Counted from the stretch's first letter, positions 27,349-64,000 are shown. The stretch is DNA of 64,000 nucleotides from Podarcis muralis (GCF_964188315.1 NC_135667.1:13082001-13146000), one strand, 5' to 3'. Notes: a model not told the origin generated them from the sequence alone. A program made the numbers and translations.

Positions 27349-27350
<2 letters not shown>

Positions 27351-27386: not shown

Positions 27387-27389
<3 letters not shown>

Positions 27390-30347: not shown

Positions 30348-31914
30348 CCACTTCTTGCATATCACTGTGAAAATCGGTGAGAAAGAAGATGGTAATAAGA
30401 TACTTCCATCAGAGTCTTAAATCAGTGAAGAGGGGCATCCTTTTGTCAGTTTCCGCTATTCTTGACTGTGTCCTGAGACTACAGTCATAGTGGATCATAT
30501 GTTATCATAGGAATATAGTGAGTCAGACTGCTGCTCCATCTTACTCAGCAACAACTGCCCAAGGGATAGGGAACCTGTAGCCTTTCAGACCACAATGGCT
30601 GAGACTGATGGGAACTGTAACCCAAAGGGCCGTAGGTTGCCTGTATTTATGATTTACACCCCTACCTCCCAAGCCCACCCCTTTCAGGAAGACAGCAAGG
30701 TGCCTTATATTGATCATTGGTCCATTTAGCTCTGTTATAGTCTGCAGCAACTGGCAGTGTTTCTTCAGGGTTTTAGACACAAGAAAATTCACATGTTGGG
30801 CACTGGATCTGTGATGTTCTGAATACAAAGCAGATGCTTTGCCTCTGAGCTATGATCCTTCCCCATCTTATCAGCTCCTCTAAAATATACTACCCATTTC
30901 CCCACGTTTTATATAGACACATGCAGCTGAAGTCACCAACTATCAGTCCTCCTAAGAAGTAGACCACTTTGCAAAATGCAATGTAATAAGCGTCTTCAGA
31001 GCTGCTGCAAAAGGAGATTGCAGGAGATTCTAAGGAGAAGTTATCATCCATTGATTAGTATGAAGAAAGCACAATCAGCTTTGTGTCCTCTCACACCTCT
31101 TTTATTTAGCAGTAGCTCCACCACCAGAGACTGCATCTCCGGACTCCTTTTATAGACACAAGGAGTAGTCTGAATGTATCCCTTTGTCTATCTTCATTAC
31201 TTAATTGTATCTATGAATGCTGTGTTGTTTAAAGGCTTATCTTACAGTGGAATGCCTCTCCTCTTTTCATGTCTTTCTAAAATCCATCCTAGTCCTTGGT
31301 TTCACCCCACCCACCATTTGAATAAGTTTTCCACCCCCACCTCTTTTTCAGGAAATGTGGGCTGGTGGACTGATGTTCCTCTTCCTTACCCATTCTATTC
31401 TTAGTGTCTCTCAGATAGGTCTAACCATTTCTGTAAATGTTAATGGAAGAGAAGGGAAGAGAAGGGAATGTTACAATGAGGAGTGCTTCACTGTCCCACT
31501 TAGCCATCTCTTCTTCCTGTAAACTCCATTGTAGTCTCACTCTTCTAGCTCACCATCTTTCCACCCCCACCTTGAAAATAGCAAGAGGCAGTTAGCTTTC
31601 TGTGACCACTGGACATGAGCACAAGAGCACTCTTCTCTGCTGTGGATTCCAGCAACTGGTATTCAGAAGCATACTGCCTCCCACCATGGAGGTAGAGTTT
31701 GGCCATCATGACCAGTAGCCATTGATGGCATTGTCCTTCATAAATCTGTCTAATCCTTTTTTAAAGCTATCCACATTGGTGACCATTGCTGCTTCCTGAA
31801 TTACTTTCCTTCATCCATCCTGAATGATCATTCAGTTTCATTGGTGTTTACTGTTTTTTTATATATGCTGTAAGGTTCACAGAGTCGCTGGGGTGTCACA
31901 GCTGGATGGGCGGG

Positions 31915-31956: not shown

Positions 31957-34571
31957 TCCTGAAAAAAAAATTGTTTTCACTTTTGATGACCTTGGGGTTC
32001 CACTGAGGATGCTGACCCTTCCCTTTCATTTCTCAGTGGTCCTGTTTTCGCTACATCCCTTTTGGTGCCAAGCTCACTCTTAGACAGGACCACAGATGTT
32101 GCAGCCATGATATTCCATTATGCAAAGTAAAAAGAACCAGCTAGAGAGCTCATGGGTAGCTTGTGAGATTTATTGCTTCAGCATATTGTAATGTTCAGTA
32201 ATAATGAATTGCACAAATGCACACAAACACACAGACTTTGTAAACCACACTGAGAGCTTTTTTATGATCAAGTAGTATATAAATAGATATCTCAGTGACT
32301 TCCACCCATTGCATCATGTTTAGAGTACCAGGTGTAGGAATTCTGGAAGAATTATTAATAGGTGTTCAGCGAGATGATCACGGTGTGATCTGGAATAGCA
32401 GTTCTAATTCATCAAATTATTATATTTTGCTTAGCAAGGAATATCACTTCCCTAACCTCATTATTCCAAAAGCACGCTGAGACTGAACCATTCCAGATCA
32501 GGCTGTAGCCATCTAGTGGAATGTTCTGTGTTCTGACAGTGGTCAACCAGACACCTATGGGAAACCCACAAAAAATACATGCGTGTAATAGCCCTCTCCT
32601 GCTGCCTTTTCCCAGCATTTAGAAGCATGCCACCTGTTTCTGGAGGCATTATATATAGTCTTCAGTGTTCTGGGTGGACAATTACATCCTAATAATGCTG
32701 ACCAGTAGCCATATTACCCCTATCACCAATCTACCCACCAAAAGGCATGTGGAGTGCTGGAGATAGAGAGGGGAGATTAGCAGATGAAACTGCAGGAGAG
32801 CTCCTTGGAGGAGTCTACAAAGTAATACTTTGCAGAATTTTGCACCCTCCTTTTTGGAGAAATCTAATGCATCCTCAACTGGGTTTTTACTCACCTGCAA
32901 ATCCGAGCAGAAGTGTCTTGATGTTTTCTTGATGTTGGAGGAGACCCCTGACTAGCTCAGAATCAGCGTGAACCTATTTGATCCAGTTTCTTCTTCTGCC
33001 TGTGAGTGGTGTGGGGCTGTGAATAGCTGTGTGGATGATATAGCTGTTTGAGAAGCAGGATGAAGAGCAAATTAACAGTCAATGGAATGTGCAGGATTAA
33101 TTGCTCATTCCTTTCGAAAGGAGACTGCTGAGGCTGGTGCCTTATCCGCTCCTAGGGAGCTAGTGGAAAAGGTAATGCTTTGTCACTGTGGCAAATGTTA
33201 CATGATGTCCCTCAAGGGTGCATGGTGCTGGTTTAAGTTCTGGCTTGTTTCCCTTGGTAAATGACAAGGGATCAAAGAAGATGGGAAGAGAGAAGGATGC
33301 GATTTTCTACCCCTTTCTTGAATACATGATTTCACCAACTCCACCAATAGAATCATTTCAAACTGTTCCATTCTGGGTGGAAGGAAGGATAGGATTCCAA
33401 GTGAATAACAAGATTAGCAAGATTTCTGAGAGGTAGATCTTTGTGTGAATCAAATGGTCCTTGCCTGAAAAATGTACCTAAACAGTTCTCAATCCAGAAA
33501 TTCACAAGACAGGACAATTTAAAAAACATATTTTTATTACACCGGGGAGGGAGAAAACGAGGTTTCAGTCACAATGGTCTAATCAATGCAATGGAATACC
33601 TCCATGAATCCATTTTAATTCTAATTTCCTGATACATTTGTACTCCTCAATCTGAAGAAATAAAGGGCCTGATACATTTGTACTCCTCAATCTGAAGAAA
33701 TAAAGGGCCCTTTCCAAGTGGAGAAGAAAGTAGTGAACTGTAACACTTAGCTATAGAAACCACAAGAAATTAGAATAGATGTCATTGAACTATCTCAGGA
33801 CTGGAGATGTGTTCCTGAAGCTCTGTGAATGCGTGTAAGTTGAAGTCAGAAGTCAAGACCAGGAACTCTGAGTCTTCTGGACTCATAAAACTGCCCTTGC
33901 AATTGTTTTGAGTTTCAGGGCTGCAGGACTGAAACCCCGGGTAGCCATAGCCAGCTGGTATAGACAATACTGTGGAGATGGACTAATGGTCTGATTCAAT
34001 ATAAGGTAGGTTCCTGCCTTCCTATGAAGAAGGTGTGGGATAACCAGCCTCATGTAACCAACATGCTTAAGTCTAATTGATGCATGAAGGGGTTAAAACC
34101 ATAAAGTAAGCTGTCCTGCCAGGTTTAACTAGAGTCACTCACCATCTCCTTTGTAGGAAAGGTTATCAAGCCCCTTGTTCTGCTTTCATTCCACCATGTG
34201 AACCCTACTAGTAAAGAGGTCTGAGTTGGTTGTATCAAACTCAGACCACATGGGTTAAACAATATATATACAAATGATTTATATACAAATGATTAAAAAA
34301 TACTCACCACTTTGAAACCTAAGTTTTAATGCCCATGTTTTCAGACTGCTGTATGGACAAGCACATGAACCTGACCTTTGAAGTGTTTGTAAGCAAACCA
34401 TGTGTAACTTAACAAATGTGTGGACTCTTTCTATGCTGAGGGAAGATGGAAACTTTGGGAGCAACTCAAAAGGGGACATTTAAAAAGTCTAACAGGCTAT
34501 ATCACCACATTTTACTTTGCTGCATATCTTGTGATTTTAAAACTCTGTTGGGGTTCTCTAACCAATGAGTA

Positions 34572-36971: not shown

Positions 36972-37910
36972 TCAATGAGTGGAAACCTGCCCAGAAAGCC
37001 TTGCCAACAGATTTCCAAGGGCAGCCTTCATCTCCTTGTTCTTCAAAGCATAGATAGTTGGGTTCAGCAAGGGGGTGACAGACATGTAGAAGACAGAGAG
37101 CACTTTATCAATCATGAACCGGGCATACGGACGCAGGTAAATAAACATAATGGGCCCAAAGTACATGGTGACCACAATGAGATGAGAGGTACATGTGGAA
37201 GCAGCCTTGGTGCTCCTTTCAGACGCCCCCCGAGAGCGGATTGTGTACAGAATAAATCCGTAGGAGAGAAGTAAGCCAACAAAAGTCACCAGTGACATAA
37301 TACCACTGTTGGTGATCATCATGACTTCCAGGGGGTAGGTGTCAGTGCAGGCCAACGTGATGATCAAGGGGAGGTCACAGAAGAAACTGTCCACCTGATT
37401 AGGCCCACAGAAAGGTGCATTAATGATGAAACCCAATTGCACAGTGGCATGGAGGAGCCCACCAGCCCAGGAGGCTAGCACAAGCCCCATGCAATGCCAC
37501 CGGCTCATAAGTGAGGTATAACGGAGAGGATGGGCGATGGCCACATACCGGTCATAGGCCATGGCTATCAGCAGGAGCATCTCACTGCCTGCAAAGAGAT
37601 GGAGAAAGAAGATTTGTGCCATGCAGCCATGGAAGGAAATGGCATGGTGTTCGGAAAGAAAATCAAAGAGATTTGGGGTGGAAAAGGAAGACATGCAAAG
37701 GTCCAGGAAAGCCAGGTTACCCAGAAGAAAGAACATGGGTGAGTCTGAAAGGTGGTGATCCTTGAAAATTGCTGAGAGGATGAGGATGTTGGTGAATAGT
37801 GTAGCCATGTAGAGGAGAAGGAATAAGACAAATAAGAAGATTTGGACTTCCCAGGTTTCAGAGAGGCCCAGCAGGAGGAACTCAGTCACCGTTGTCTGGT
37901 TTGTTGACAT
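36972..37910 (-). CDS. OR4-family olfactory receptor OR-3, intact, 312 aa
   Basis: Full OR motif set; close paralog of OR-2. Confidence 0.94.
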   Translation of the reverse strand: MSTNQTTVTEFLLLGLSETWEVQIFLFVLFLLLYMATLFTNILILSAIFKDHHLSDSPMFFLLGNLAFLDLCMSSFSTPNLFDFLSEHHAISFHGCMAQIFFLHLFAGSEMLLLIAMAYDRYVAIAHPLRYTSLMSRWHCMGLVLASWAGGLLHATVQLGFIINAPFCGPNQVDSFFCDLPLIITLACTDTYPLEVMMITNSGIMSLVTFVGLLLSYGFILYTIRSRGASERSTKAASTCTSHLIVVTMYFGPIMFIYLRPYARFMIDKVLSVFYMSVTPLLNPTIYALKNKEMKAALGNLLARLSGQVSTH

Positions 37911-40900
37911 TCCTTACAGTACTTGCGTATCACTGTGAAAATTTGGAAGGGAGAAAGGAGACAATAATGAGATACTTCCATCACAGTTTTCGGTTAAATC
38001 AGCAAAGGGTGTGCCTTTGTATCATCTGACATTATTCTTGACTGAGTCCTGGGATTCCTAGCCTAGTGCTTCATGCATTATCCCAGGAACATATGTAGGT
38101 GACTTATAATGAGTCAGACCATCAGTTCATCTAGCTCACTATTGTCTTCACAAGGGATGGGGAACCTGTGGCTCTTCAGATGTTGGTGTTATTCACCTCA
38201 CATCATCATCCCAAAAACTGAGCATGCTAGCTGGGACTCATCAGAGTTGGAGTCCCCTGCAACCACAGAGAGACCAACCTTTTTGGATGACAGCAAGCTG
38301 TCTTATTTCAGGTCAGATCATTGGTCTTTTGAACTCAGTATAGTCTGTAGTAACTTGGAGTAGTACTTCAGGGTTTTTGACAAAGGAAGAATGCTGGAGA
38401 TTGAACCTGGAACTTTCTACCGCTGAGCTATGACCCTTCATCTTATCAGCTCATCTAAAATATACTGCCCTTGTGCCCATAGTTTTGTGCATACACCCCA
38501 ATTCCCTAATTACCCATCTTCCTAAGAAGTAGACCACTTTCCAAAAAAAAAACACACTGTGTGAACAGAGGGAACTCACTGGAACTCAGTTCTGGCACCT
38601 CTCAGGTGTGTTCCAGAACAATGACAATGGGTGTCATTGCCATTCTAAGAGAAAGAGTGAGTTCATGGCGAGTTCCAGCACCTCTTTTTCTAGAAAAATA
38701 GCACTGCCTGGAGCACAATCCCTTTGGGTTCTTTAGATCTGGTGCAGCAGAGATTAGGGGATATTCTAAGAAGAAGTTATCATTCAGAGAAAACTGTGGA
38801 GAAGAAAGCATAAGCTGCATGGTGCCCTCCACAGCTCTTAGTGGCAGCTCCACCACCAGGGTGTGTGGCAGTGACTACATGTTAGGATTTTAGTTGTCAC
38901 CCTCCACCTCTTTTTTAAGGAAATGTGAGCTGGTGAGCTGAAGCCCTGGTCTTTCTCTTCCTCACCCATTCCATGGTTCCTTGCACATGAAGTGTAAGTA
39001 GAGTTACAACAATCACCCTGTTCTCACAGTGGCCAACCAGATTCCTGCGGGAAACCTGTAAGCAGAACCTGAGCACAAGAGCACTCTCCCCTGTTGTGGC
39101 TTCCAGCAACTAGTATGAAGAAGCATATTGACTCTGACCATGGAGGCAGACCATAGCCATCATGACTTGCAGCCTCTGATAGCCCTGTCCTCCATGAATG
39201 CATTGAATGCTCTTTTAAAGCCATCCAAACTGGAGGCCATCATTGCCTCCAGAAGTACTTTATTTCATCTGTTTCCCCTTTCAGCTTCATTGGTGCTTCC
39301 CTATTTTATTTGTGGCACTTCTGTTAACCTTGGGGTTCCATTGAGGGTGCTGATACACTCTTCTTCCTCAGCAGCCCTCTTTAGGCTGAGCCCTGTTGGT
39401 GCCAAGATCACTGTTAGACGGCATTATAGATATTACAACCATTGTGTTCTGCTGTGCAAAGTAAGAAGAACTAGCTAGGCAGGTCATACCCTAGGAGTTA
39501 TTGTCTCAGAATATTGTAATATTCAGTAAGAATAGAATAGACTAGAAGAGATGAGAAGAGAATAAAACTTATATTCACACACACACATACATACACACAC
39601 ACACACACACACCCAGGTATCTCAATGACTTCTATCCATGACACCATGTTCAGAGGCAGAAACAAACTGGCAGAATCATTAACAGGTTCAGATGCATTAT
39701 CATGTCTTATTTTGTTATTCTCTTACAAAGCAGCATCTTGTTAGGCACTGTCAGAAAACGGAGTCCTCATCTAGATGGTCACCTTTTCCAATGTTTCTCT
39801 AAATGTTAATTTTCACATTACCTTTGAGTCTTCATACATTGCAAAAGGCACTTTCAGACCTACACTAGAATATGGCACAAACTTTAGTGCTAATTTCTAT
39901 GTTATTTGCTGCCAGGGGAAAAATAAATCATTGGAAATAGTATTGAAATAAGTGGTAAACCTAGGCTATATTTCTCTATAATTTTGGAAGTGGATTTTGC
40001 ATCATGTGAAAGCTCAAATTTAATGTAAAAAACAACAGTTAGGGAACTGTTGGGAAAGTGGAATAAACATGCACATACAAGCCACAGTCTGATCTGGAAT
40101 GGTAGCTCTGATTTCTTAAGATCTTATATTTCGCTTTGCAGGGAGCACCAGTTCCCTAACCTCAGGATTCCAACAACATGCTGGTCCCAAACCATTATTG
40201 ATCAGGCTGTGCCCATATAACTGAGTGCTTTGCCTTCTGACGGCACCTATGGGAAACCCACAAAAAGGACATGAATGTAATAAGCCCTCTCCCGCTGCTG
40301 TTCCCCAGGAATCAGAGGCATGTCACCCCAGTACTCAATGTAATATATATTCTCCAGTCTTCTAGATGAATGAGTATGTCGTAACAATGCTGACCAGTTC
40401 CCACATTGCCCCATATTCCATCAGTAATTCAACCACCAAAAGGCATGTGGGGTGCTGGAGTTGGAAATGAGAAGTTTAGGTGACAGAAACTGCTGAAGAG
40501 CTCCTTGAAGGAGTCTGCAATGTGTCATTCTTCCCAAAGGCACTTGCCTTTGGACAAATCTAACACCCCCTCAAATGGTCTATATCACCCACCTGCAAAT
40601 CCCAGCAGAGATTCTTTGAAGTTTTCTGGAGCAACTTCTTCTGTTCAGCTCAGCATCAGCATGGAGCTGTTTGATTCAGTTTCGTCTTCTGCCTATGAGT
40701 GGTGTGAGGATGAGTTATCTATGTGGATGTGATCTCTGCTTGAAAGGCAGGCTAAAGAGCAAATCAAGAGACAGTGGTATGTGTGTGTAATTAATTGCTC
40801 ATCCCCCCCCCCGGGGGGCTGCTTTAGTTGGTGCCTTATCTGTTCTCACAGAGCGGGGGGGGGGGGTAATACTTTTGTCACTAAAGCAAGATTTACACAG

Positions 40901-42124
40901 CTGCCCTCAAGGATGCATTGTGCATTGGTTTGACTTCAGGTCTGGTTTTCTGGGTAGATGGTGAGAGATAAAAAGGGGGGGATAAATAGGGGTGTGATTT
41001 TCTTTCCCTGTCCCAAGTGTGTGTGATTCTACCACCTATCCCAATGGAATGATATCCACCTCTAATTAGGGGAGGAGCTTCTTTTTCATTAATGCTAATG
41101 CCCCTATAGGAACGGCATCAATTTCTATATCCTCGAGTGTTGTCCACTGGTTTCACTTACTTGATGACATTGACTTGTCTTGAGAGACAATGGAAGAGTG
41201 TGACATCTGGGCTAAAGTCAATCAATCAGAGGCATCGTGTGGTGTGGAGCTCCGGGGTGGCTTCTCTGACCCCAGATTTCTGAGGGGGTGCATCCCAGTG
41301 GCCCTACAACAGGCTCCCTTGCCAAGGCTCCCTTTCAGAACCACAGGGAGATGAGCTGTGCATGGGCTGGGCCTTCAGGTCTGTGCTGGCATTGCTTCCC
41401 CCTCATGGCTGGTGATGGGAGGCCTCCCACTTGACGTCCACAAAGACTCCTGGCTCTTCCACTTCTGCACCGGCAAGATCACTCAAGAAGACATGTTAAA
41501 TTCTTCTCACCCATTCTCTTTCCTCTTCCTCTCTTTCCTCCCCTCCCTCCAATCCCACCATTGTCTCTTTCTTGTTTCAGTTTGATCACTGCCTTCCTGG
41601 TCAAAATCACCTCTCAGTCAAGCCAAGACAAGCCAGCTGGCTAAATCAGTTGTGGGTAGCCAATCAGTCTTAAGTTCTTAGTAAGCTAGGGACTTGTTAC
41701 CCACTGCATGGGAAGACATCTGCAGATTGAGCGGATGAGAGCAATAATGGGTCCAATGGGTCAAGAAGGTGTTTTCTAAATTTGCTGTAGAGGGAAATAA
41801 GGGGCAGACCTGGAAAGGTAGCCCACCCAGGAAGGGGTGGAAGGTTTACAGGGTTTTCAGTAGACAACAAGATCAGCAATAAGATTTTTGTTTATACTTT
41901 CCCCCTTCTATTTTATTTTTCTGTTGCAAAATTGTACACATATAAATAACAAAACATGACATGACTGACAAAAAATGGGTAGGTAAAAAATAAATTATGG
42001 TGCAGGTAAAAAATAAATTATAGTACATAATGATGACGTGATTACAGTTAACCAGTGCAATGGATTTTTCAATAAATCAATTTGGTAAACACAGAACAAT
42101 AGGAGTGAGCTAAGGGGTATTGCC

Positions 42125-43050: not shown

Positions 43051-44010
43051 CTAATGATAGGGCTGGCCTTGAGTGGAAACCTTCCCAGAAAGCCTTGCCA
43101 GCAGGCTTCCCATAGCAACCTTCATCTCCTTGTTCTTCAAAGCATAGATAGTTGGGTTCAGCAAGGGGGTGAAACAGGTGTAGAAGATGCAGAGCACTTT
43201 ATCGGCCATGAATTGACTGTATGGCTGCAGGTAAATAAAAATACAGGGCCCAAAGTACATGGTGACGACAATGAGGTGAGAGGTACATGTGGAAGCAGTC
43301 TTTGTGGTCCTTTTAGAGTGGGGCATGGAGCAGATGGTATGAATAATGAATCCATACGAGAGAAGCAGAGCGACGAAAGACACCAGTGACAAAATGCCAC
43401 TGTTGGTGACCATCATGACCTCCAGTGGGTAGGTGTCAGTGCAAGCCAACTTGATGACAAAAGGGAGGTCACAGAAGAAATTGTGCACAAGATTGGGCCC
43501 ACAGAAAGGTGCCTTAATTGTAAAAACCAATTGCACAGTGCTGTGGAGGAGCCCACCAGTCCAGCAGGCTAGCACAAGCCCCATGCAATGCCGCCGATTC
43601 ATGAGTGTGGCATAATGGAGAGGATGGGAGATGGCCACGTACCGGTCAATTGCCATGGCTACCAGCAGGAGCATCTCACTGCCTCCAAAGAGATGAAGAA
43701 AAAAGATTTGTGCCATGCAGCCATGGAAGGAAATGACATGGTGTTGGGCAAGGAAATCAAAAAGAGATCTTGGAGTGGCAAAGGAGGACAGGCAGAGGTC
43801 CAGGAAAGCCAAATGAGCCAGGAGGAAGAACATGGGTGAGTCTGAAAGATGGCGACATCTGAAAATAGCTGAGAGGGTGAGAATGTTGATGAAGAAAGTA
43901 GCCATATAAAGGAGGAGGAAGAAGACAAAGAAGACCAATTGGACCTCCCAAGTTTCAGAAAGGCCCAGCAGGACAAACTCAGTCAACATTGTCTGGTTTC
44001 CCCATGCCAT
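43051..44010 (-). CDS. OR4-family olfactory receptor OR-4, intact, 319 aa
   Basis: ATG at 44010; full OR motif set. Confidence 0.93.
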   Translation of the reverse strand: MAWGNQTMLTEFVLLGLSETWEVQLVFFVFFLLLYMATFFINILTLSAIFRCRHLSDSPMFFLLAHLAFLDLCLSSFATPRSLFDFLAQHHVISFHGCMAQIFFLHLFGGSEMLLLVAMAIDRYVAISHPLHYATLMNRRHCMGLVLACWTGGLLHSTVQLVFTIKAPFCGPNLVHNFFCDLPFVIKLACTDTYPLEVMMVTNSGILSLVSFVALLLSYGFIIHTICSMPHSKRTTKTASTCTSHLIVVTMYFGPCIFIYLQPYSQFMADKVLCIFYTCFTPLLNPTIYALKNKEMKVAMGSLLARLSGKVSTQGQPYH

Positions 44011-44118
44011 TGTCTTCTTGCAAATCACTGTAAAAACTGGAAAGGGAGAAAAAGGTGGTAATGAGATACTTCCATCGTAGCCTTAGCAAAGGGTGTAGCT
44101 ATGTGTCAGCTGCCATTA

Positions 44119-45203: not shown

Positions 45204-45805
45204 TACAGATAGGTAGCCGTGTTGGTCTGCCATAGTCAAAACAAAAAAAATTCCTTCCAGTAGCACCTTAAAGGAATTTTTTTTGTTTTGACTATGGCAG
45301 ACCAACACGGCTACCTATCTGTAACTGGAACTATGGAAGGCACCACATTGAGCCGCATGAAATGGAAGTCCATCAACCTCACCAAGAAACTTGCACAGGT
45401 ACAGACTGATATCTTCTTTCTTACTAAATGCAAGAACCTGGACATTCTACCCAAGGGTCTTAGAATTAAGAACCCTCTACAATCCACGTATCCCACTGAA
45501 TATGCAAGAAAACTATTATCTCATTATACATGACAAAGCCATTTTTCACCTTCTCACCCCTTGCTTTTTCCTGTAAGACCTATTGCAGTCGTTAAGAGTC
45601 GTCAACAGGCTCATCACAGCTATCTGCCAATCACCCATTCCCACCACCCTTCTGAGTAATACCCCTCCCCACCTTCTCACTATATAGAAGGATCTGGCAA
45701 CTTCTGTTTCAGTGTATCTGAAGAAGTGTGCATGCACACGAAAGCTCATACCAAGAACTAACTTAGTTGGTCTTTAAGGTGCTACTGGAAGGAATTTTTT
45801 TTGTT
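45204..45805 (+). mobile_element. Internally deleted Penelope-like element
   Basis: 12-bp TSD TTAATATTGTGT (45192, 45806); inverted terminal copy at the 5' end; N-terminal ORF piece KLAQVQTDIFFLTKC..PKGLRIKNPLQSTY joined directly to the 3' terminal repeat. Confidence 0.8.
45714..45751 (+). ncRNA. Minimal type-I hammerhead ribozyme motif
   Basis: GUAU-CUGAAGA-A-GUGUGC(AU)GCACAC-GAAA-GC-UC^AUAC: helix I GUAU/AUAC, complete catalytic core, CUC cleavage triplet at 45745-45747. Confidence 0.75.
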
Positions 45806-47597
45806 TTAATATTGTGTGTTGCTCTGATTGAATTATTAATAGGCCAGATGCATTAGCTCCCCCCATTTTGTGATTCCTTTCCAAAGTAACATCTGGTTAG
45901 TCACCATAAGAAGTGCTCAGCTTGATGTCACAAGCTGAAATCACACTGCAGTTTAGTCCATTTTCCCATTTCACGAACTGTTAATTTCTGCATTCACATG
46001 ATGCAAATATCACTTCCAGAACTATAGTGCCATTTAGTCCTAGTTTCCATGTTATTCCTTTCCAGAAAAAATAAAAATCATTTGCAACTAATATGGAAAT
46101 GAGCACTAAATATTCCCTATATTCCCCTATAGTTCTTGAAGTGGCTTTTATGTCATGTGAAAGCTCTAATTACATGCAGAAATTAACAGGGAAGCATCAG
46201 GAAAATTGAATAAACTGCCATGGGTATGTAGCTGCTGTCTGATGTAGAATGACAGTTCTAATTTCTCAAATGTAACACAAGTGCAGTAGACCTCTCCCAC
46301 AGCTGTTCCCCAGGATTTAGAGGCCCATCATATCAGAAACTGGGTATAGTATGTAGTCTTCAGTGTTCTGGGTGGACAATTACACAATAATAATGCTGAC
46401 CAGTCCTCACACTACTCAGCAATCTATCCACCAAAAGGCATTTGGAGTGCTGGAGTTAGAGAATGGAAAAGAGAAGATTAGTTGATGAAAATGGCAGGAG
46501 AGCTCCTTGGAGATGTTTGCAATATGTCATTCTTCCCATTGTTTCGCACCTGCCTTCTGGAAAAATGCAATACATCCTCAAGTGGTTTCTCACCCACCTC
46601 CAAAATCCAACAGAAATTCCTTGAGGTTGCTACAGCAACTTCTTCTGTCCTGATCAGCATGGAGCTGCTTGATCCAGTTCCTTCTTCTGCCTGTGGCTGG
46701 TGTGGGGATGACAATATCTATGTGGATGATATATCTGCTTGACTGCATCTGTTGGTGTGTTATCTGCTCCAATGGTGCTAGAGAAGAAAACAATACTTTG
46801 TCACTAAGGGATGTGATACACAACTGTCCTCAGGGGTGCATTGCTTATTGGTTTGACTTCTCATTTGGTTTCTTGGGTAGGTGGCAAGGGATCAAAAACA
46901 GGGTAATCTCCAAACTGTGCATGTGCACTCAACCAATTGAATGATCTCCAATTCTATTAATCTTCAAAGAAGGAAGGAAGGTTGTATATGATATTAATAT
47001 TATCAATACATTTTGTGGCTATATCATTACCCAGGTGCTCAGCTAATCTGGCAACCCTGTTACATATGTCACTAGGAACATGCATGTACCCATGTACCCA
47101 AAACACAGACCTCTGAGTGGTAGATCAAATGTTCACTGCTCTCAAAATGTGCCTAGCCTTAAACCATTTGGTCTGTGGGGAAATGGGGAATCATTGTTGC
47201 CCTTCCATTAATTCTATATCAACAAATACTGGACCACTACATTTAAATGATTCCATGTTCTGCCTCCAGAATCTTACCTTGAAGATCTACTTAGATCAGA
47301 GCTTTGTTTACCCAAGAGTATGGTTATTTTCGAAGGAGATAAAAATGTGTAATCCCAGATCCACATATTTTACACAGTCCAGGCATCTATAAGCCATTTG
47401 ACTTTCCAATGCCATTTTGATGCTTTGTAATAATATGCCAATTTATCTTTATCCTGAATGGGGACTCTGGCTACATACACACTATACCTTTAAAGTACAT
47501 TCAAAGCACATTGTTTCCCACAAATAATTTGGGGCACTGTTACTCCTCACAGTTATAGCTCTCAGTAAAGCCTCTCCTCCTCCCGGAGGGGAGGGGT

Positions 47598-49000: not shown

Positions 49001-49352
49001 GCGGGTGGCGCTGTGGGTTAAACCACAGAGCCTAGGACTTGCCAATCAGAAGGTCAGCGGTTTGAATCCCCGCGACAGGGTGAGCTCCCGTTGCTTGGTC
49101 CCTGCTCCTGCCAACCTAGCAGTTCGAAAACACGTCAAAGTGCAAGTAGATAAATAGGTACCACTCCGGTGGGAAAGTAAACGGCATTTCCGTGCGCTGC
49201 TCTGGTTCGCCAGAAGTGGCTTAGTCATGCTGGCCACATGACCCGGAAGCTGTACTCCGGCTCCCTCAGCCAGTAAAGCGAGATGAGCGCCGCAACCCCA
49301 GAGTCGGTCACGACTGGACCTAATGGTCAGGGGTCCCTTTACCTTTACCTTT
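49001..49352 (+). mobile_element. Sauria SINE, second subfamily
   Basis: CGGGTGGCGCTGTGGGTTAAACCACAGAGCC head, ACCTTT tail; no clear TSD. Confidence 0.9.
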
Positions 49353-49859
49353 AAATATGCTGGAGAAACATGAACTCTGAGCATGACCTGATTTACAGGC
49401 ACAACCCTTTTTGTGCCATTTAAAGCTGCCATTTGGGGGGTAGCTTTTCTCTTACAAGGGTGGGTAGTATCTGAGGGTTAAAAAATTGTAACATGTTTTT
49501 TGTTCTGAGCTTCTTGTCCATCTCCTTGCATGGGCAGTGGGAGACTGCTTGCAAACAGAACAATAATGATCAACAGCTTGCCTTGCTTTCTTTGTTTTAT
49601 CTCTGACTAACATAGCTGAAGTGCACTGCAACACCCCTGCCTTGTGGCAAAACTGTGGGCCCAGGATCTTGCTCATATCACACTTCTGTGGCAGCATGGG
49701 CTTACACATGAGTTAACACATAATGCATGTGTGATCAGGGATGTGTGAGTGAGGACAAAATGCTTTTGATTGTTGAAGATCTAGCCCTGAAACCTGAGAA
49801 AATAATAACTAACATCTGAACATTGTGAGGAAAGAAAGAAAAAAGAACGAATTCCTTAT

Positions 49860-50110
49860 TCTTCCTCTGGGGTAAAGGGCAGTGAAAAGGGTCACATTCT
49901 TTTCCTCTTTGGGAAGAACAAAATACTTCCCTGCTCATCTAAAGGTCTTGGCACACAGACACTGGAAGCTGCCATAGTAAGAGCTCCAGAGACTCAAGGC
50001 AGAGACACCCCAGCTATCAGTCTTAAGGGAGCTCATTAAAAAGTTTGCATTGTGCATCAGAGAGAGCGAGAGTGCAGGTGACCTCTGGGATGGAAATGGA
50101 AATGGTGAAG
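49860..50110. promoter_or_regulatory. Candidate OR cluster enhancer (H/P-element-like homeodomain + O/E motif cluster)
   Basis: TCATTAAAAAGTT at 50033-50045 = AACTTTTTAATGA on the minus strand; adjacent TCCCTTAAGA (50021-50030) and other O/E-like sites at 49863 and 50081. Confidence 0.55.
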
Positions 50111-51030
50111 CAGTAGGCCTTGATCTGGGCCCTAGTCCAACAACCATTTATCCAAGGAATAAGGCAGAAGAGCGTGTCCATGGAGAAAAATTCACAACCA
50201 TTTGTGCACTGTTTCAACTAGCCATGCCTTATTTCAGGGTATTCCATTCCTTCCCCTTTCCACTCAAAAAGGAATTTAGAATCCCTTGGCTGGTGAACAT
50301 GCTCAGTACTTATTCAACAGGGTTTTTTTTTGGGGGGGGGCTGCCTTCCCCAAGGCTATTTTGCATTTTATAGTTGTACTTTTGCAAACGTGGCGGTTCT
50401 CCCAGACTGATGATGATGATGTAAAAATTAGAATTAAACTTGAATGCAAAGCTCACATTTCTTCAGGTTTAAAGTACATACTGTAGCTTCCTGGGAGCTC
50501 TAGTTCCATCTCACAGATCTACAGTTCCTATCATCCATAACAAACTACAGTTCTTGGGATTCTTTGGAGGAAGTCATGTGCTGTAGATGTGTGCTGAATG
50601 TGCTTTAAATGTATTGTCTGAATCTATCTTCTCAGTTAGGGTTGCTATGTCTCCTCTTTTTCCAGGCCATGTGCTCTTTTTTAGGGGTAAAGTTTCTGTC
50701 CGAATGGATTTTTTAAATTTGCAAAAATGTCTTTGGCTATAATTTCTGCATGAGACATAGACTTAACTGGTGCTTGAAGACTTGCTTTCCTCTTCTCTTC
50801 TCCTGTCCCCCTGAGCAATATATCACAGCTTCTATAGCCTACATATAGCAGAGGTATTTAAAATAAGAGTTGTTCTAGAGTCCTTTTCTTTGCTCTTCAA
50901 AACATGTACTGTTAATCTACTGTTGTCTTTGGAATTCACTAAGCAAAGGGTGTGTAAGAAATCTAATGAATAATGATTAAGTGCAAGGAAGCATAAGAAT
51001 AAAAGCAAGTATAGCAATGCTATGCCATAG

Positions 51031-51972
51031 TTATCTTTCACTTGTCTGGAAATTTTGTATTTTTTTCAGCAGTTTCCACATAGCAACTTTGACCTCCCTG
51101 TTCCTCAGTGTGTAGATCATGGGGTTCATCACAGGGAAGATCACTGTGTGGAAAAAGGCCACCACCTTGTCAAACGGGTGGTCCTGGAAAGGACGGCAAT
51201 AGATATAGATAGCTGGGCCAAACATAATGAAGATAATGATGATGTGGGTCATGCATGTAGAGGAGGCTTTGTTCTTCCCTTGGCTTGAGCCCTTCCTCAC
51301 CTTGACAAGGAGGGCCACATAAGAGATGAGGAGGAAGATGAAACATCCAGTAGTGACCAGACCACTGTTAACAAACATGACAAACTCTAATGTATTAGTG
51401 TTGGTGCAAGCCAGCTTGATGATCTGGGTTGTGTCACAAAAGAAGTTGTCCAACTCATTGGGGCCACAAAAAGGCAGTGGGGCAATGAGAATGACCTGGA
51501 TCATGGTGTGTATGAAACCTGCAGCCCATGCACACACCAGCATAGCCCAGCAAACCACCCTGGTCACCACAGTGACATAGTGCATTGGGTGGCAGATGGC
51601 CACATAGCGATCCACAGCCATGGAAATAAGGAGAATGATCTCTGCCCCACCGAGGAAATGAATGAAGAAAAGCTGAGCCATGCAGTCTCTGTAGGAGATG
51701 GTTCTGCAGCCAGCCAAGAAGTTGGCTATGATCTTCGGAGTTGTGACACAGCTGTAGCAGATGTCCATGAAGGCCAGGTTGGCCAAGAAGAAAAACATGG
51801 GGGATCCCAAATGGGGGTCATGCCTAATTGTCATAATGATGAGGACATTTCCAGGTAGGATGATGGCATAGAAGAGCAGGAGTAGGGTACAGAAAAACAG
51901 CTGCACCAACCAGACCTCTGATATTCCCTGGAGAACAAACTCGACCACTACTGTATGAGTCCCATTTTCCAT
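51031..51972 (-). CDS. Olfactory receptor OR-5 (OR4 family, second subgroup, OR4N/4M-like), intact, 313 aa
   Basis: HLGSPMFFFL, MAVDRYVAICHP, FCGPNELDNFFCD, KASSTC, PVMNPMIYTLRN. Confidence 0.94.
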   Translation of the reverse strand: MENGTHTVVVEFVLQGISEVWLVQLFFCTLLLLFYAIILPGNVLIIMTIRHDPHLGSPMFFFLANLAFMDICYSCVTTPKIIANFLAGCRTISYRDCMAQLFFIHFLGGAEIILLISMAVDRYVAICHPMHYVTVVTRVVCWAMLVCAWAAGFIHTMIQVILIAPLPFCGPNELDNFFCDTTQIIKLACTNTNTLEFVMFVNSGLVTTGCFIFLLISYVALLVKVRKGSSQGKNKASSTCMTHIIIIFIMFGPAIYIYCRPFQDHPFDKVVAFFHTVIFPVMNPMIYTLRNREVKVAMWKLLKKIQNFQTSER

Positions 51973-53904: not shown

Positions 53905-54712
53905 AGTGAGAAGGAGAAGAAGGGGTAAGAAGAGCTGCAGAAGAACAAGGAAGGATAAGAAAAGGGCTGTAGAATTGAGAGAAAGCTGCCTCTTACCAGT
54001 TCCCAATTGCCCTCCCTAATTTTCTAGCAGTCCTTGAGGCACCACTAGGCTCCCTCATCCATCTCCATGGCTATATGGCTTCTGGCCCTAGGAGAGCCAA
54101 AAGTGGGGAGAAGAAGTTGCCTATTCAAGGACATCCAGGGCCCTTAGGAGCAGCTCCTTCCATTGCCTCCCAAGGACCTTATTAAAAAGTTAGCATCAAG
54201 AACTTTATTAAAAAGTCAGCTTTGGAGCTTCAGCTGCCAGGACTTCAAAGTACAATGCAGGGAAGTTTGGAAGTCCTATAAATTATCAGTTTTTGGAGGT
54301 TTGGAAGTAGCATGGGGCTGTTTAAAGCAGGGATTTCAAACAGCTCGTGCTGCCCTTTGAATCTTCAGGCAATATGCTGACAAAGCAGACCCCCAACAGG
54401 ATTGAACCCCACTGTTCCACCCATCAGGTGATGTCACCCAATTATATCAGATGATGGACAGGTGGGTGTGGTTTGCAGAATATGGCCTCATGAGTCATCT
54501 TGGACTCCCGGGAGGGGCAAGACTGACCCATGGGACAGAGGTTTCCTACCCCTGAGTTAACATTTGCCCAACAACACTAGATACTGAAAAATCCTTGGTT
54601 TTGCTGACATGATTGTGATAGCATTTTATCTGAACAATCTCTTCCTTTGGTAGACATGATTGTTGCATTACTGTTAATTTCTCTCATCTACTTTTGATCA
54701 GCTTACTGCAAC

Positions 54713-57209: not shown

Positions 57210-58160
57210 CTAAATTTTATACTTCATCATCAGTCTCCACATAGCAACTTTGATCTCCTTGTTCCTTAGTGTGTAGATCGTGGGGTTCATCAAAGGGAAG
57301 ACCACAGTGTGGAAAAAAGCCACTATCTTGTCAAAGGGGAAATCTTGGAAGGGGCGGCAGTAGATGTAGATAGCCGGACCAAACATGATGAAGACAATGA
57401 TGATGTGGGTGATGCACGTAGAGGAGGCTTTGCTCTTCCCTTGACCAGAGCCTGTCCTCACCTTGACCAGCAAAGCCCCATATGAAATGAGGAGGAGGAT
57501 GAAACATCCAGTAGTGACCAGCCCACTGTTAACAAACATGACAAATTCTAATGCATAAGTGTTGGTGCAAGCCAGCTTGATGATCTGGGTGATGTCACAA
57601 AAGAAATTGTCCAGTTCATTGGGGCCACAGAAAGGAAGTGGTATGATGAGAATCACCTGGATTATAGAATGTATGAATCCTCCTGCCCATGAACCTACAA
57701 CTAACATCCAGCAAACCACTCTGGTCATCACAGTGGCATAGTGCAGTGGGTGGCAGATGGCTACATACCGATCCACAGCCATGGCAATAAGGAGGTTGAT
57801 CTCGGCCCCACCCAGAAAATGAATGAAGAAAAGCTGCGCAATGCAGCCCCTGTAGGAGATGGTTCTGCAGCCAGCCAAGACGTTGGCTATCATCTTTGGA
57901 GGGGTGACACAGCTGTAGCAGATGTCCATCAAAGCCAAATTGGCCAAGAAGAAAAACATGGGGGATCCCAGATGGGAATATTTCAAAATGGTCACAATGA
58001 TAAGGATGTTCCCAGGTAGGATGATGACATAGAAGAGCAGGAGGAGACAACATAGGAACAGCTGCAGCTCCCAGATCTGTGATAATCCCTGGAGAACAAA
58101 CTCTGCCACTACTGTGTAGTTCAGTTCCATCTCCACTACTGTATGGTTCCATTGTTCCAT
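57210..58160 (-). CDS. Olfactory receptor OR-6 (second subgroup), intact, 316 aa (306 aa from the second ATG at 58130)
   Basis: Full OR motif set; duplicated N-terminal decapeptide. Confidence 0.93.
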   Translation of the reverse strand: MEQWNHTVVEMELNYTVVAEFVLQGLSQIWELQLFLCCLLLLFYVIILPGNILIIVTILKYSHLGSPMFFFLANLALMDICYSCVTPPKMIANVLAGCRTISYRGCIAQLFFIHFLGGAEINLLIAMAVDRYVAICHPLHYATVMTRVVCWMLVVGSWAGGFIHSIIQVILIIPLPFCGPNELDNFFCDITQIIKLACTNTYALEFVMFVNSGLVTTGCFILLLISYGALLVKVRTGSGQGKSKASSTCITHIIIVFIMFGPAIYIYCRPFQDFPFDKIVAFFHTVVFPLMNPTIYTLRNKEIKVAMWRLMMKYKI

Positions 58161-60670
58161 TTTTAGAGTGCATAGCTCTGCAGTCAAATAATGATGAAGA
58201 TATTAAACAGGAAAAATCTACAAGGTGGGTTTCCCCTCTCCCCCTTTCATCTCAAGGTTATATAAACAGTGCATACAGCCCATTGATTGGCTGGTTTGTA
58301 AGAAACCAGTGGTCCAGTTATTGTTTGGGTATCTTGTCCAGCTATTGCTTTTTCAAAAGGCAAATGAAAAGTCAATTTCAAATGAAAAGAAGTTTATCAT
58401 ACTGGTATAGTTTTCAAAGTGCCAGGAATAGATGCACTTTCTTGACTAAAGCTTGGTAATCTCTTTTTTTACCACACATATATTTCCTCTAATAAACACT
58501 GGCTTCCTTGTTTTCCTAAACCCAGAGTCTCAGTGTGATTATATCTGGGGTAAAGCATGCTTCTCCAAGAGGGGTTCAGTATTCAGTTCAGCTTCGGCTG
58601 AGCATTCACCTCCACATGCCAACAACATAATCTGGGACCATTGTCCATACTGTCTAGGCCTTGATGCAGCCCAGCAACACCAAAAGGACCACAGGTTTTC
58701 CTTCCCTGTTCTAGTGAAAGAATTTCAAGGAGGGTTATTCTCTACTGGTCATTGACTGAAATAAAAAAATGAGAAAGATAGAGTGGTGGAATTTCTATTT
58801 AATAAGCATCAGTTTGAGGCTCATCTGTGCATTTCATATTTTAGTGCTCTTTCGCTTGCTGCCCAAATTAATGCAGTAGAAATAATGTTATGATTGGCTA
58901 CTAATGTCCTCCTTGTTAGGTTACTGGTGTGCTAATAGTTTAGGCTGAGTGCTCAGTGTGTAACGAACGAACTCTGGGCAATATATATATGAGATATATA
59001 CATCTTTTCAATTAGATACCCATCAGATCAGGAAGAGATAAGAAATATCCAGCTGTGGGCAGAAGTGGGTAGAGAGAACGAGCAAAAATATTTGATTAGA
59101 GAGATCCTGTGCTTATAGTGCCTAAATGGAGTTAAGAGAGTACAGAAGTTGTTCTCTGAAGATTTATTCCCTGCTTTAGGAGCGCCTGCTTGCTTCCATC
59201 ATTCTTTGCCTGGATAAATAATGGGACTGAATAATCACAGGAAATAGATACACACACACATAAAGGTTCTCTCTCAGATACCCACATTATGGACCCGTGA
59301 AGTAGAAAATATGCAAACACATGAGTTTTCCAGAAGAGGGACCTCAAAATATTACCTTTCTTTTTCTGAAATCCGGTCCCTCCAAGAGAAAAGGCATGAT
59401 TGTTCTCTCATTAAAATGGATGCAAGTTTTAGACTATCTTTTGCAACATAGAAAACAATGAATGTATGTTTCCTTTTAAACTACTAATGAGAGGAAAAAC
59501 AGTTTAGATAAAGAACATAAGAACATAGGAACATAAAGAACATAGGAAGCTGTCTTATACCGAGTGAGACCATTCATCTATCTAGCTTGGTATTATCTGC
59601 ACTGACTGGCAGTTGCTCTCCAGGATTTTAGACAGGAGTCTTCCCTACCTGGAGAACCCAGGGATTGACTCTGTGGCCTCTGTACCACTTCACTATTGGT
59701 AGCAGAGAGAATTCAGAACCTTGCCCATCCCATCAAAGACCTTGTGGCTAAAGGAGTGAATACAGTCACTTCAGCTCCCTCACCCTATTCCTTTATCACT
59801 CCTCTTGCTTTCTTGCAGAAGGAAGGAAGGAAGGAAGGAAGGGAGGGAGGGAGGGAGGGAGGGAGGGAGGGAGGGGGGTATGATGGGAGACAGAGAAGGC
59901 TGAAGTGTGAAGATGTAGCTGTCACTTACCCCCTGCTGCCACCAAGTGTATGACAGCCCTTGAGGCAGCGGCAGGTCTGCTCATCCTCCCTAGCTATATT
60001 ACTTCTGGCCCTGGGAGAGCTGAAGGTGAGGAGGTGTGTATCAAAGGATAAGCTGGGCTCTTGGGTACAACCCTTCCACAGGCTCCCAAGGGCCTTATTA
60101 TAAACCAAACTTCTTTTTCATTTATTTCCAATGCTTCAAGGCTACTTCAAGGATGTTGATTGGAAGCTTGTGGCTGACAACCCCATTTTGCAATCCTAAC
60201 TACACTTATTGGGAAGTAAATATATTTGCATGAACATGCTTAGGAAAGTATGGTAAGGTGGGGATGCCATGATGATTTTCTGGGGGCAGTACACAGGCTA
60301 TGGATTTTCTCTTCTGCTACATTCCTCAAAGGAGACACATATTTGAGAACAATGAACAAAACACCAGGAGTTCTATTGCTTTTATTTTGTTTTTGTTTTT
60401 ATATAAAGGTTTTGCTTTCTCAGTGAAAAATTGGTGTTTTTTATTTGGAAATATTTATATATGATTTTATATTAATATGTTTTTTGGTCATGTTAATACC
60501 ATGGTTCATCCAAGGAACACGAAACAGTATCCATGTTCCCCAATGTACATTCATTGGAGTGTCAGAAAGCGATGATGTCTACCCTATTTGCATAAGATCT
60601 ACACATCCATGAGAACCTTGTGCCCCATGAATCTTGGGAAGAGGGACTGATTGTGAAATCACTAATTTCT

Positions 60671-61585
60671 TTATTTCTTCATCAGTTTCCACATAGCAAC
60701 TTTTATCTCCTTGTTTCTCAGTGTATAGATCATGGGGTTCATCAGAGGGAAGACCATGGTGTGGAAAAAGGCCACCACCTTGTCAAAGGGATAGTCCTGG
60801 AAGGGATGGCAGTTGATGTAGATGGCTGGACCAAACATAATGCAGGCGATGATGATGTGGGTGATGCACGTAGAGGAGGCTTTGTTCTTTCCATGGTTAG
60901 AGCTTGTCCTCACCTTTATTAGCAGGGCCCCATAAGAGATGAGGAGGAGGATGAAACATGCAGCACTTACCAGGCCACTGCTAACAAACATGAAAAATTC
61001 TAATATGTAAGTGTTGGTGCAAGCCAGCCTAATGAACTGGGTGACATCACAGAAGTAGTTGTCGAGCTCATTGGGGCCACAGAATGGCAGAGGGATGATG
61101 AGAATGACCTGGATTATGGAGTGCAGGAATCCTCCAACCCATGAACATACCAGCATACCCCAGCAGACTACTTGGGTCACCATAGTAGCATAGCGCAGTG
61201 GCTGGCAGATGGCCACATACCGGTCAATGGCCATGGCAATGAGAAGGAACATCTCAGCTGCACCAAGAAAATGAATGAAAAAAATCTGAGTGATACATCC
61301 CAGGTATGATATAGTCCTGCGTCCAGAGAATATGTTAGCCATGAGCTTTGGTGGGGTGACACAGCTGTAGCAGATGTCCAAGAAGGCCAGGTTGGCTAAG
61401 AAGAAAAACATGGGGGATCCCAGATGGGGGTCCTTACAGATTGTCACAATGATGACAAAGTTTGCAGGTAGGATGATGATGTAGAAGAGCAGGAGAAGAA
61501 CACAAAGGAACAGCTGCATCTCCCGGAGCTGTGACAACCCCTGGATAACAAACTCTTTCACTACAGTGTGATTCCCATTTTCCAT
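60671..61585 (-). CDS. Olfactory receptor OR-7 (second subgroup), intact, 304 aa
   Basis: ATG at 61585 after a TTTTGCAG acceptor; full OR motif set. Confidence 0.93.
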   Translation of the reverse strand: MENGNHTVVKEFVIQGLSQLREMQLFLCVLLLLFYIIILPANFVIIVTICKDPHLGSPMFFFLANLAFLDICYSCVTPPKLMANIFSGRRTISYLGCITQIFFIHFLGAAEMFLLIAMAIDRYVAICQPLRYATMVTQVVCWGMLVCSWVGGFLHSIIQVILIIPLPFCGPNELDNYFCDVTQFIRLACTNTYILEFFMFVSSGLVSAACFILLLISYGALLIKVRTSSNHGKNKASSTCITHIIIACIMFGPAIYINCHPFQDYPFDKVVAFFHTMVFPLMNPMIYTLRNKEIKVAMWKLMKK

Positions 61586-62830
61586 CCTTGCAGATGTAGT
61601 CCTGCAAAACAATTATATTCGGATTGTTAAACAATAAATGATTGCAATCCCACCGCCCCCATTTATACACCTTATTATAAATGCAACCAATTGGTAGGCT
61701 GGCCAGGAGCAGATCAAACTAGCTCACAAGTTCATGTTACATTCAGGTTCTGTGGCTTTTGCGCAGAGAAATGAAGATTGCCTAACAGCACTGTATGGGA
61801 TAGATGTCTCAGTGATATGTGGTCCAGCTGGACTGGATGGCTATAATATGTTCAGAAAACTAAACCCAGGAGATGAGTCATATGGACTCCTGTGTCCATA
61901 TGATGTCACTGATAGTGAAGAACATGATGTCACTGATAGTGAAGAGGAGAAATTCATTTCAGTGTGCAGTTAAAGCCAAATCGATCACATTTGCACTTTC
62001 AAAATCAATTCATGGTTTTTTAAAAAAGAAAACCACATAGATATTTATCATCATTTTATTGCAAATTTCTCCTAATATAAATATTTTTGTATGCAATTTT
62101 GCAAAATATACAGAGATTTCTGCAAAACAATTTCCTTTGATCTAATCAATTTCTTTAAATATTATTTTCACTTATGTGCATTTTAATGCACATTTTGCTG
62201 TAATATAAGCTATTCTCTACATATTACTTAGGTGTAGGACTAGGATGGTATTCACCTCTAGTCCTACTCAGTGCAGATACATTGAAATTATTGGACATGG
62301 CAATCTTTTGTTCATTAATTTCAATGGGTCAACTCTGAGTAGGACTTAGGTGACTATAATCCCTACACTGCAAAATTCAAACAGGTGCGAATTTCAAAGG
62401 TTGTCTTTTCTTTGGTTTGCATATTGTTCAGAAAACTAAACCCAGGAGATGAGTTACATGGAGTCCTCTGTGATCTGAACATGATATCACTGATAGTGAA
62501 GAGGAGAAATTCAATTCAGTGTGCAGTTAAAGCCAAATCGATCACATTTGCACTTTCAGGAACAATAAACAAACCACAAGACAACTATTGTTTGAAACTT
62601 GCACTTATCTGAATGGATTGAGCCTGAAACCTTCTGAAGTGCAAAACAGATTACCACTGAGTTATGGCCCATTTCCCAAATCTAAGGATAACAAGACTGA
62701 GATTCAGTGCTGCTGCTGCTGCTTCTGGACCCTATATCTTCCTTCCTCCAACCACAGAGATTCTCAAGACCATGATAGAATGATCAGATCTGACTGAAAA
62801 CCTTTTGCTGCCTGAAATGAGGAATAAGAT

Positions 62831-63404: not shown

Positions 63405-63731
63405 GGGACACAGAGCCTAGGACTTGTCGATCAGAAGGTCAGCAGTTTGAATCCCTGCAATGGGGTGAGCTCCCGTTGCTCGGTCCCTGCCCCTGCCAAC
63501 CTAGCAGTTCAAAAGCACATCAGAGTGCAAGTAGATAAATAGGTACCGCTTCAGCGGGAAGGTAAACAGCGTTTCCGTGCGCTGCTCTGGATCGCCAGAA
63601 GCGGCTTAGTCATGCTGGCCACATGACCTGGAAGCTGTACGCCAGCTCCTTCGGCCAATAAAGCAAGATGAGCACTGCCACCCCAGAGTCGGTCACGACT
63701 GGACCTAATGGTCAGGGGTCCCTTTACCTTT
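63405..63731 (+). mobile_element. Sauria SINE, second subfamily, A-box region deleted
   Basis: 13-bp TSD TACCCCCTTAAAG; head reads GGGAC|ACAGAGCC, lacking ~24 nt present in the 49001 copy. Confidence 0.9.
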
Positions 63732-64000
63732 TACCCCCTTAAAGCAAGAATAGGGAACCACTAGTCCTCTAGATATTACTGGACCACAACTGTCACCATC
63801 CCTGACCACTTGCCATGGTATCTGGAGCTGGTGAGAGTTGAACAACAGCTGGAGGGCTGCAGTTTAGCCAACTCTGCCATAAAGGTTTGAGGCAGTCAGA
63901 AAAAAGCAGCCACCATGCCACCCAGCCTGATCCTCCACCAGACCCCTCCTCCGTGTTCTCTTTGCTTCCTTAGTATTGATTAGCATGGAAGATAAGAACA

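Follow-up and report, generated by a model that had tools for sequence, protein, structure and literature searches.

Does a short sequence that is shared with the OR gene-choice elements of mouse, and lies between two groups of OR genes in a lizard, belong to a regulatory element, and if so, to what kind? Mouse is, to our knowledge, the source of everything known about such elements (H, P, J and the Greek Islands), and the literature that we searched yielded no paper on an endogenous OR regulatory element in a reptile. The 64-kb stretch of Podarcis DNA analyzed here (hereafter, the window) contains an exact match to the 13-mer AACTTTTTAATGA. The initial annotation of this DNA proposed that the match marks a squamate OR gene-choice enhancer and that the enhancer grammar of mammals is older than the mammal-reptile split.

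The motif and the conserved element around it

All seven OR coding exons of the window lie on the minus strand. Those of OR-1 (23292-24134), OR-2 (29391-30365), OR-3 (36972-37910) and OR-4 (43051-44039) are OR4K3-like; OR-4 has its ATG at 44010, preceded by a pyrimidine tract with a CAG acceptor at 44039-44037, and its stop codon is included at 43051. The protein encoded by OR-4 shares 98% identity with a P. muralis entry. OR-5 (51031-51972) is OR4N2-like, and OR-6 (57210-58187) and OR-7 (60671-61612) are OR4N-like. The motif lies 986 bp past the OR-5 stop codon, at the boundary between the OR4N-like group (OR-5 to OR-7) and the OR4K-like group (OR-1 to OR-4), in agreement with its earlier placement about 1 kb past this stop between two OR subgroups. 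Two V2R-type (family C) vomeronasal receptor exons (13495-14394 and 17226-18077, minus strand; 7tm_3 and ANF_receptor) are found, co-oriented, at the end of the OR array. The window also contains a Ty3/gypsy pol ORF (7-3888, plus strand; 1293 aa with RT, RNase H and integrase), which runs off the window start, and a LINE (4978-8953, plus strand) with a 342-aa ORF1 and a 979-aa ORF2 (endonuclease and RT); both look young. A SINE-like repeat of ~350 bp is present in four window copies that are 80-90% identical (49001-49352, 63409-63735, 19860-20217 and 15544-15895), and an old repeat fragment at 50489-50603 matches several places in Rhineura.

On the minus strand, positions 50046-50021 read AAACTTTTTAATGAGCTCCCTTAAGA. 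The 13-mer, an extended homeodomain (HD) or Lhx2-type site, occupies 50033-50045, with its TAATGA core at 50038-50033, and 2 nt further on the O/E-like site TCCCTTAAGA occupies 50030-50021, giving the side-by-side pair TAATGA-GC-TCCCTTAAGA (50021-50038). The initial annotation had read the strand in the same way, as the 13-mer followed after 2 nt by an O/E-like TCCC site, and had correctly noted that 14 nt match the 21-mer ACATAACTTTTTAATGAGTCT. Two of its statements on the mouse literature are borne out by the papers: H, P and the P3 promoter share the 13-mer as their "extended homeodomain site" (PMC7804114, PMC5638857), and the 21-mer, when multimerized, serves as a 21-bp gene-choice enhancer (PMC8213819; bioRxiv 10.1101/2021.09.28.462154). 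The window contains a single exact match to the 13-mer, whereas 100 dinucleotide-preserving shuffles gave no match; composition predicts ~0.006 matches per 64 kb on both strands (~0.6%), close to the ~1% estimated before. The DNA carrying the motif has no second copy in the window, consistent with its description as non-repeat DNA. A (CT)n microsatellite (50050-50072, minus strand) lies directly upstream of the motif; its length varies among four lacertids and is much expanded in P. raffonei.

The further O/E-like sites that had been claimed are both present, one on the plus strand at 49863-49872 (TCCTCTGGGG), of which only the TCCC half is partly conserved, and one on the minus strand at 50081-50090 (TCCCAGAGGT), which is moderately conserved. 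Since sites within 2 mismatches of TCCCNNGGGA occur ~7 times per kb in the window, these two alone carry no weight, and such loose sites are not enriched in the conserved element described below (6 observed versus ~3 expected). Similarly, the local 17-mer fits the degenerate composite pattern WWAHDRRBHHHHNDRDD (PMC11643329) at 17/17 positions, but this adds little because the pattern has 147 matches in the window and is too permissive by itself.

We obtained orthologous loci from public assemblies using the OR-5 and OR-4 proteins. When the 7-kb interval between OR-5 and OR-4 was compared with distant squamates by blastn, only two blocks could be aligned. One, which we call CNE-1, is a non-coding element of ~400 bp (~49730-50170, minus strand) with the 13-mer at its conservation peak; it starts ~0.9 kb past the OR-5 stop codon, is deeply conserved and present once in the window, and lacks a coding exon or a conserved splice donor. 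The other, CNE-2, lies upstream of OR-4 and is described in the next section. CNE-1 was identified by blastn in Elgaria (L005:14707-15101; E 1e-25, with the exact 13-mer), Eublepharis (L006, two copies, the better with E 6e-14) and Sceloporus (L007:15436-15734; E 4e-10), and by nhmmer, using a profile built without the two species in question, in Tiliqua (L011:5742-5924; E 1e-20) and Thamnophis (L010:5405-5624; E 2e-16). Syntenic orthologues, each with the exact 13-mer, are also present in the lacertids Lacerta, Zootoca and P. raffonei, such that all four lacertids including Podarcis retain the motif. In every case CNE-1 has the orientation of the genes, with CNE-2 and then an OR4K3-like coding exon downstream of it, and an OR4N-like gene precedes it wherever the sampled locus extends far enough. 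The element thus occurs in Gekkota, Scincoidea, Lacertoidea, Anguimorpha, Iguania and Serpentes, which we take to represent the whole of crown Squamata, roughly 200 million years.

In the seven-lineage alignment, the top 20-column stretch is 50041-50022 (TTTTAATGAGCTCCCTTAAG; mean majority fraction 0.92), where the HD and O/E-like pair lies. The runner-up, 49992-49973 (0.81), includes a second conserved O/E-like site, TCTCTGGAGC (49983-49992, minus strand), which lies 38 bp beyond the first in the CNE-1 core and reads TCCCTGGAGA in Eublepharis copy a. The first O/E site reads TCCCTTGAGA/G or TCTCTTGAGA in other squamates; TCCCTTGAGA/G, with 1 mismatch to TCCCNNGGGA, is the ancestral form. In lacertids its right half-site TTGAG has changed, to TGAAG in Zootoca and to TTAAG in the others, so that the site differs from TCCCNNGGGA by 2 mismatches. 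A position matrix of the core scored 40-51 bits, with one match per locus, against a null maximum of 7.6.

Conservation, by which the enhancer proposal was to be judged, is accordingly evident across squamates, where it peaks exactly on the motif, and is not elevated among lacertids alone: in the four-lacertid comparison CNE-1 did not exceed its flanks (89% versus 87-91% invariant columns, p = 0.41). The lacertid comparison is uninformative, because the whole interval is ~90% identical and CNE-1 does not stand out from it. Outside squamates, neither the profile nor the matrix detected CNE-1 above the null at the alligator locus, although the exon-1 module of the OR4K genes was detectable there (E 1e-5), or in hare within 10 kb on either side of the OR4N2 gene. 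The best alligator candidate (L009:6211, TTTTCAAAGAGGTCCTGGGAC) was rejected, its score being under the null maximum. The Rhineura and Hemicordylus loci proved to be wrong paralogues with no OR4K gene downstream and are uninformative on CNE-1.

Promoter modules of the neighboring OR genes

CNE-2 (~46540-47124, minus strand) appears to be the promoter and non-coding exon 1 of OR-4, since it contains an invariant splice donor block that is followed by the CAG acceptor and ATG of OR-4. Its exon ends at 46598, with the donor GT at 46597-46596, and an O/E-like sequence, CACCCCTGAGGA, lies near 46835. Paralogous modules, which we call k-type, are found upstream of OR-3 (40541-40937), OR-2 (32843-33240) and OR-1 (27110-27521). 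Identity among the k-type copies is 65-73%, and one copy is located 2.2-2.7 kb upstream of each of the genes OR-1 to OR-4. They contain the O/E-like sequence CACCCYTGAGGR, and their donor, TTGSAG/GTRRGT, was invariant in 7/7 sequences compared. The k-type HD site, AATGAGCAATTAAT, is kept in the three window paralogues and in the Elgaria orthologue, and the lacertid OR-4 orthologues are without ~75-80 bp of the k-type promoter that include this site (window ~46743; L001:16168-16488; L003:17754-18073). OR-4 may lean on CNE-1 for a homeodomain site. In the OR-4 intron, an exact 36-bp inverted repeat pair (45238-45273 and 45772-45807, 500 bp apart) possibly represents the ends of a small DNA transposon.

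The OR4N genes have modules of another, n-type, kind, which lie 1.7-3 kb upstream of each OR4N coding exon both in the window and in every species. They consist of AACTTTTTAATAA-GG-YCCTTGGGAG, a TATA-like ATATAGC and, ~190 bp after the HD site, a donor, G/GTRAGTG, that is invariant among them; a Hemicordylus gene model has its coding start inside an n-type module and splices exactly at this donor. The OR-5 module (53912-54261, minus strand) has the TATA-like ATATAGC, a donor GT at 53996-53995, AACTTTTTAATAA-GG-TCCTTGGGAG at 54191-54167 and a second ACTTTTTAATAA at 54216-54205. The OR-6 module (59847-60180, minus strand) carries TAATAAG-GCCCTTGGGA. OR4N promoters thus contain the extended HD motif with 1 mismatch, directly abutting an O/E site, and in OR-6 and the gecko the register, TAATAAG joined to GCCCTTGGGA, is that of the mouse composite. 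In the OR-5 promoter (54167-54217, minus strand) the extended homeodomain motif occurs twice in tandem, as GACTTTTTAATAAAGTTCTTG and AACTTTTTAATAAGGTCCTTGGGAG at a distance of 26 bp; sites of this type, duplicated naturally here, have been multimerized artificially in mouse transgenes.

CNE-1 resembles these n-type promoters. Its nhmmer profile matched the n-type core upstream of every OR4N gene over 70-140 positions (E 5e-4 to 0.05), and on the CNE-1 matrix the n-type cores scored 9-21 bits, above the null maximum. Any likeness beyond this ~70-140-bp core is tentative, as it was seen in one multiple alignment only. At the place aligned to the n-type donor, CNE-1 has no conserved GT donor, and lacertids read AAGGAATT there. 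No OR coding remnant was found between CNE-1 and the OR4K gene in any species examined, and the extra gecko copy of CNE-1 is not adjacent to any exon module. A proximal promoter would be expected to come as one module per coding exon and to have been duplicated with its gene; CNE-1, by contrast, is present as a single copy and is not part of the OR4K tandem-duplication unit, whose end is near 47124.

What CNE-1 may be

The motif had been described as lying outside any promoter position. This holds for the lacertids and the snake, in which 2-3.2 kb separate CNE-1 from CNE-2 (in Podarcis, CNE-1 lies 2.9 kb upstream of the nearest inferred exon-1 module), but not for Sceloporus (about 0.1 kb), Eublepharis copy b (about 0.3 kb), Tiliqua (about 0.7 kb) and Elgaria (about 0.8 kb), and the core itself is promoter-like. 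The lacertid gap holds the inserted SINE at 49001-49352, between CNE-1 and CNE-2, and other DNA; insertions account for the distance between CNE-1 and the next exon-1 module in lacertids and in the snake, and the non-promoter position is a lineage-specific state. In Sceloporus and for gecko copy b, where CNE-1 abuts the exon-1 module, it may simply be part of the promoter. The distance to the upstream OR4N stop codon varies between 0.9 and 4.5 kb, and in Sceloporus a decayed OR4N-like pseudogene (L007:13310-14609) intervenes between the OR4N gene and CNE-1. Because this distance varies while the downstream gene stays close, CNE-1 is tied to the downstream rather than to the upstream gene.

Taken together, CNE-1 is most likely a functional cis-regulatory module of the OR cluster that has been kept in all sampled squamate lineages. 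We assign a probability of roughly 0.55 to the reading that it is an enhancer-like module, either a promoter-derived upstream enhancer or a distal promoter element. The promoter-derived, upstream character is suggested by a core that resembles OR4N promoters in an element without a coding exon of its own; on these sequence comparisons, a promoter-derived upstream Lhx2/Ebf module is most likely, and CNE-1 probably originated as the distal part of the regulatory region of the first OR4K gene. The enhancer side of this reading is partly supported by the lack of a coding exon and donor, by the location outside the OR4K unit and by the fact that each OR4K gene has its own promoter and exon 1. The original proposal of a squamate gene-choice enhancer therefore survives in part: a deeply conserved HD and O/E module with a mouse-like 13-mer and layout is indeed present, but its core is promoter-like and in several squamates it sits near an exon-1 module.

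If CNE-1 works as the mouse elements do, its TAATGA core would serve in olfactory sensory neurons as a site for Lhx2, and its O/E sites as sites for Ebf/Olf-1 proteins; Lhx2 and Ebf, with Ldb1, would keep the element accessible and raise the odds that a nearby OR promoter is chosen. The likeliest target would be OR-4, the first OR4K-like gene, whose own promoter and exon-1 module lie just downstream, and the other three OR4K genes of the array could be targets too. Two modes of action are conceivable: CNE-1 might be a proximal enhancer, which the four genes of the OR4K array possibly share, or it might be an alternative promoter.

The last of these options, taken as a separate explanation, would have the transcription of the first OR4K-like gene start inside CNE-1; a first exon arising there would be joined by splicing to either the k-type exon 1 or the coding exon, and the effect would concern that gene only. 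We consider it rather unlikely, although several observations fit it: the core resembles n-type promoters, at the same relative position ahead of every OR4N gene, the orientation of CNE-1 equals that of the genes in every species, the k-type exon-1 module is within 0.8 kb in four of the genera, the lacertid OR-4 orthologues are short of ~75 bp of their own promoter including the HD site, and the mouse P3 promoter has the same 13-mer (PMC7804114). Against these stand the absence of a conserved donor where the n-type donor would be, the complete exon-1 module with its invariant donor that OR-4 already possesses, the second gecko copy, which adjoins no exon module, and conservation that peaks at factor sites rather than over an exon-like block. 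Another role, for which the match to the mouse motif would be incidental, seems improbable; CNE-1 would then belong to the OR-5 3′ UTR, act as a boundary element separating the OR4N and OR4K sub-clusters, or be regulatory in a non-olfactory tissue. The 1.5 kb downstream of the OR-5 stop codon (49500-51033, minus strand) contain neither AATAAA nor ATTAAA, so OR-5 transcripts could run through CNE-1 and the OR-5 3′ end may extend that far. Moreover, CNE-1 sits exactly at the OR4N/OR4K boundary in every species. Three RNA-labelled runs from two other organisms contained 7-14% of the sampled words of 49900-51972, a figure for this whole stretch; the words may stem from the OR-5 coding exon, from the 3′ region including CNE-1 or from DNA carry-over. 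A tie to OR-5 is, however, hard to reconcile with the variable distance from the upstream stop codon and the intervening Sceloporus pseudogene while the downstream gene stays near; the conserved core is an HD and O/E pair like those of the neighboring OR promoters, and CNE-1 matched no Rfam family.

That the motif is a chance match in neutral DNA, or part of an interspersed repeat, is very improbable. The lacertid conservation, no better than in the flanks, would be compatible with it, as would the repeats nearby (the SINE and the old fragment at 50489-50603), but deep syntenic conservation effectively refutes it: the locus aligns with those of a gecko, a skink, an anguid, an iguanian and a snake (E 1e-10 to 1e-25), the motif stands at the conservation peak, and the ~316 kb examined contained a single copy in the window and, at each further locus, a single syntenic copy (two in the gecko), with none of the multiple dispersed copies of an interspersed repeat. 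CNE-1 is thus very probably a real and old control element. Within the preferred reading of an enhancer-like module, a more specific version is that CNE-1 is a Greek-Island-type gene-choice enhancer that arose, by the time of the squamate ancestor, from an OR4N-type promoter that lost its coding exon and was retained as an enhancer common to the OR4K array; we regard this version as possible but well short of even odds.

Relation to mouse elements and significance

The 13-mer of CNE-1 is identical to that of the mouse class II OR gene-choice enhancers H and P, and 14 nt match the 21-mer that forms the multimerized enhancer 'x21'. As in H and P, whose cores measure 187 bp and 317 bp, respectively (PMC7804114), HD and O/E-like sites cluster within a conserved core that spans a few hundred bp and lies in an OR cluster. 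Recognizable homology with H and P does not go beyond the motif. CNE-1 belongs to a squamate OR4N/OR4K cluster and is gene-proximal, with 0.1-3 kb to the next exon-1 module, in contrast to H, which is distant from its genes. The extended motif is common to H, P, P3 and J (PMC7804114). J resembles CNE-1 in its deep conservation, from platypus to human (PMC5638857, PMC7804114), in its HD1 site, AAACTTTTAATGA, and in having a composite motif. It acts over 3 Mb on class I genes, has no detectable zebrafish or Xenopus counterpart (PMC5638857, PMC7804114) and bears no relation to the cluster of CNE-1.

The nearest sequence-level relative in the literature is the composite EMSA probe from Sfaktiria, AAACTTTTTAATTGA joined to TCTCCAAGGAATAG (PMC5608512, supplementary file 7) and also given as AAACTTTTTAATTGA joined to TCTCCAAGGA, which has the same extended flank and side-by-side layout as CNE-1. 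In both, the flank is the extended AACTTTTTAAT, the HD site directly adjoins an imperfect O/E site, and ATAG(A/C) follows. The O/E site of CNE-1 begins 1 nt further from TAAT than that of the Sfaktiria composite; a 2-nt insertion impairs the Sfaktiria probe in vitro (probe: PMC5608512, supplementary file 7). Composites in mouse are reported to be enriched in enhancers and depleted from OR promoters (PMC5608512, PMC12547500), whereas the squamate OR4N promoters carry a composite. Like CNE-1, the mouse P3 promoter (Olfr713) and OR proximal promoters contain HD and O/E sites, P3 with the same 13-mer. The core of CNE-1 is similar to that of the squamate OR4N promoters, which have a TATA-like box and a non-coding exon 1; in contrast to OR proximal promoters, CNE-1 has neither a conserved donor nor its own coding exon and is not duplicated with genes.

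In mouse, we take the OR cluster on chr14 to correspond to this lizard OR cluster; Lesvos is its only Greek Island (PMC5608512 supplement). The comparisons support a motif grammar shared across amniotes, and to this extent the claim of a grammar older than the mammal-reptile split stands; a common origin of CNE-1 with the mouse elements does not follow, as no counterpart was found in the alligator or hare loci. Such an age is in any case not new: a pre-amniote grammar was already implied by the reporter activity that the mouse elements H and Lipsi show in the olfactory neurons of zebrafish (PMC5638857).

CNE-1 is a short, deeply conserved element with defined sites, and it occurs in species that lend themselves to genome editing and olfactory-tissue genomics. 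It bears on the origins of OR enhancers, since it looks promoter-derived, and the squamate OR4N promoters, with their HD and O/E pair, bear on how general the mouse rule is that composite motifs mark enhancers and not promoters. If CNE-1 is indeed a Greek-Island-type enhancer born from a promoter, it would provide a dated, sequence-level case of an OR enhancer arising from an OR promoter, and it would mean that reptiles, too, use the Lhx2/Ebf composite system for singular OR choice.
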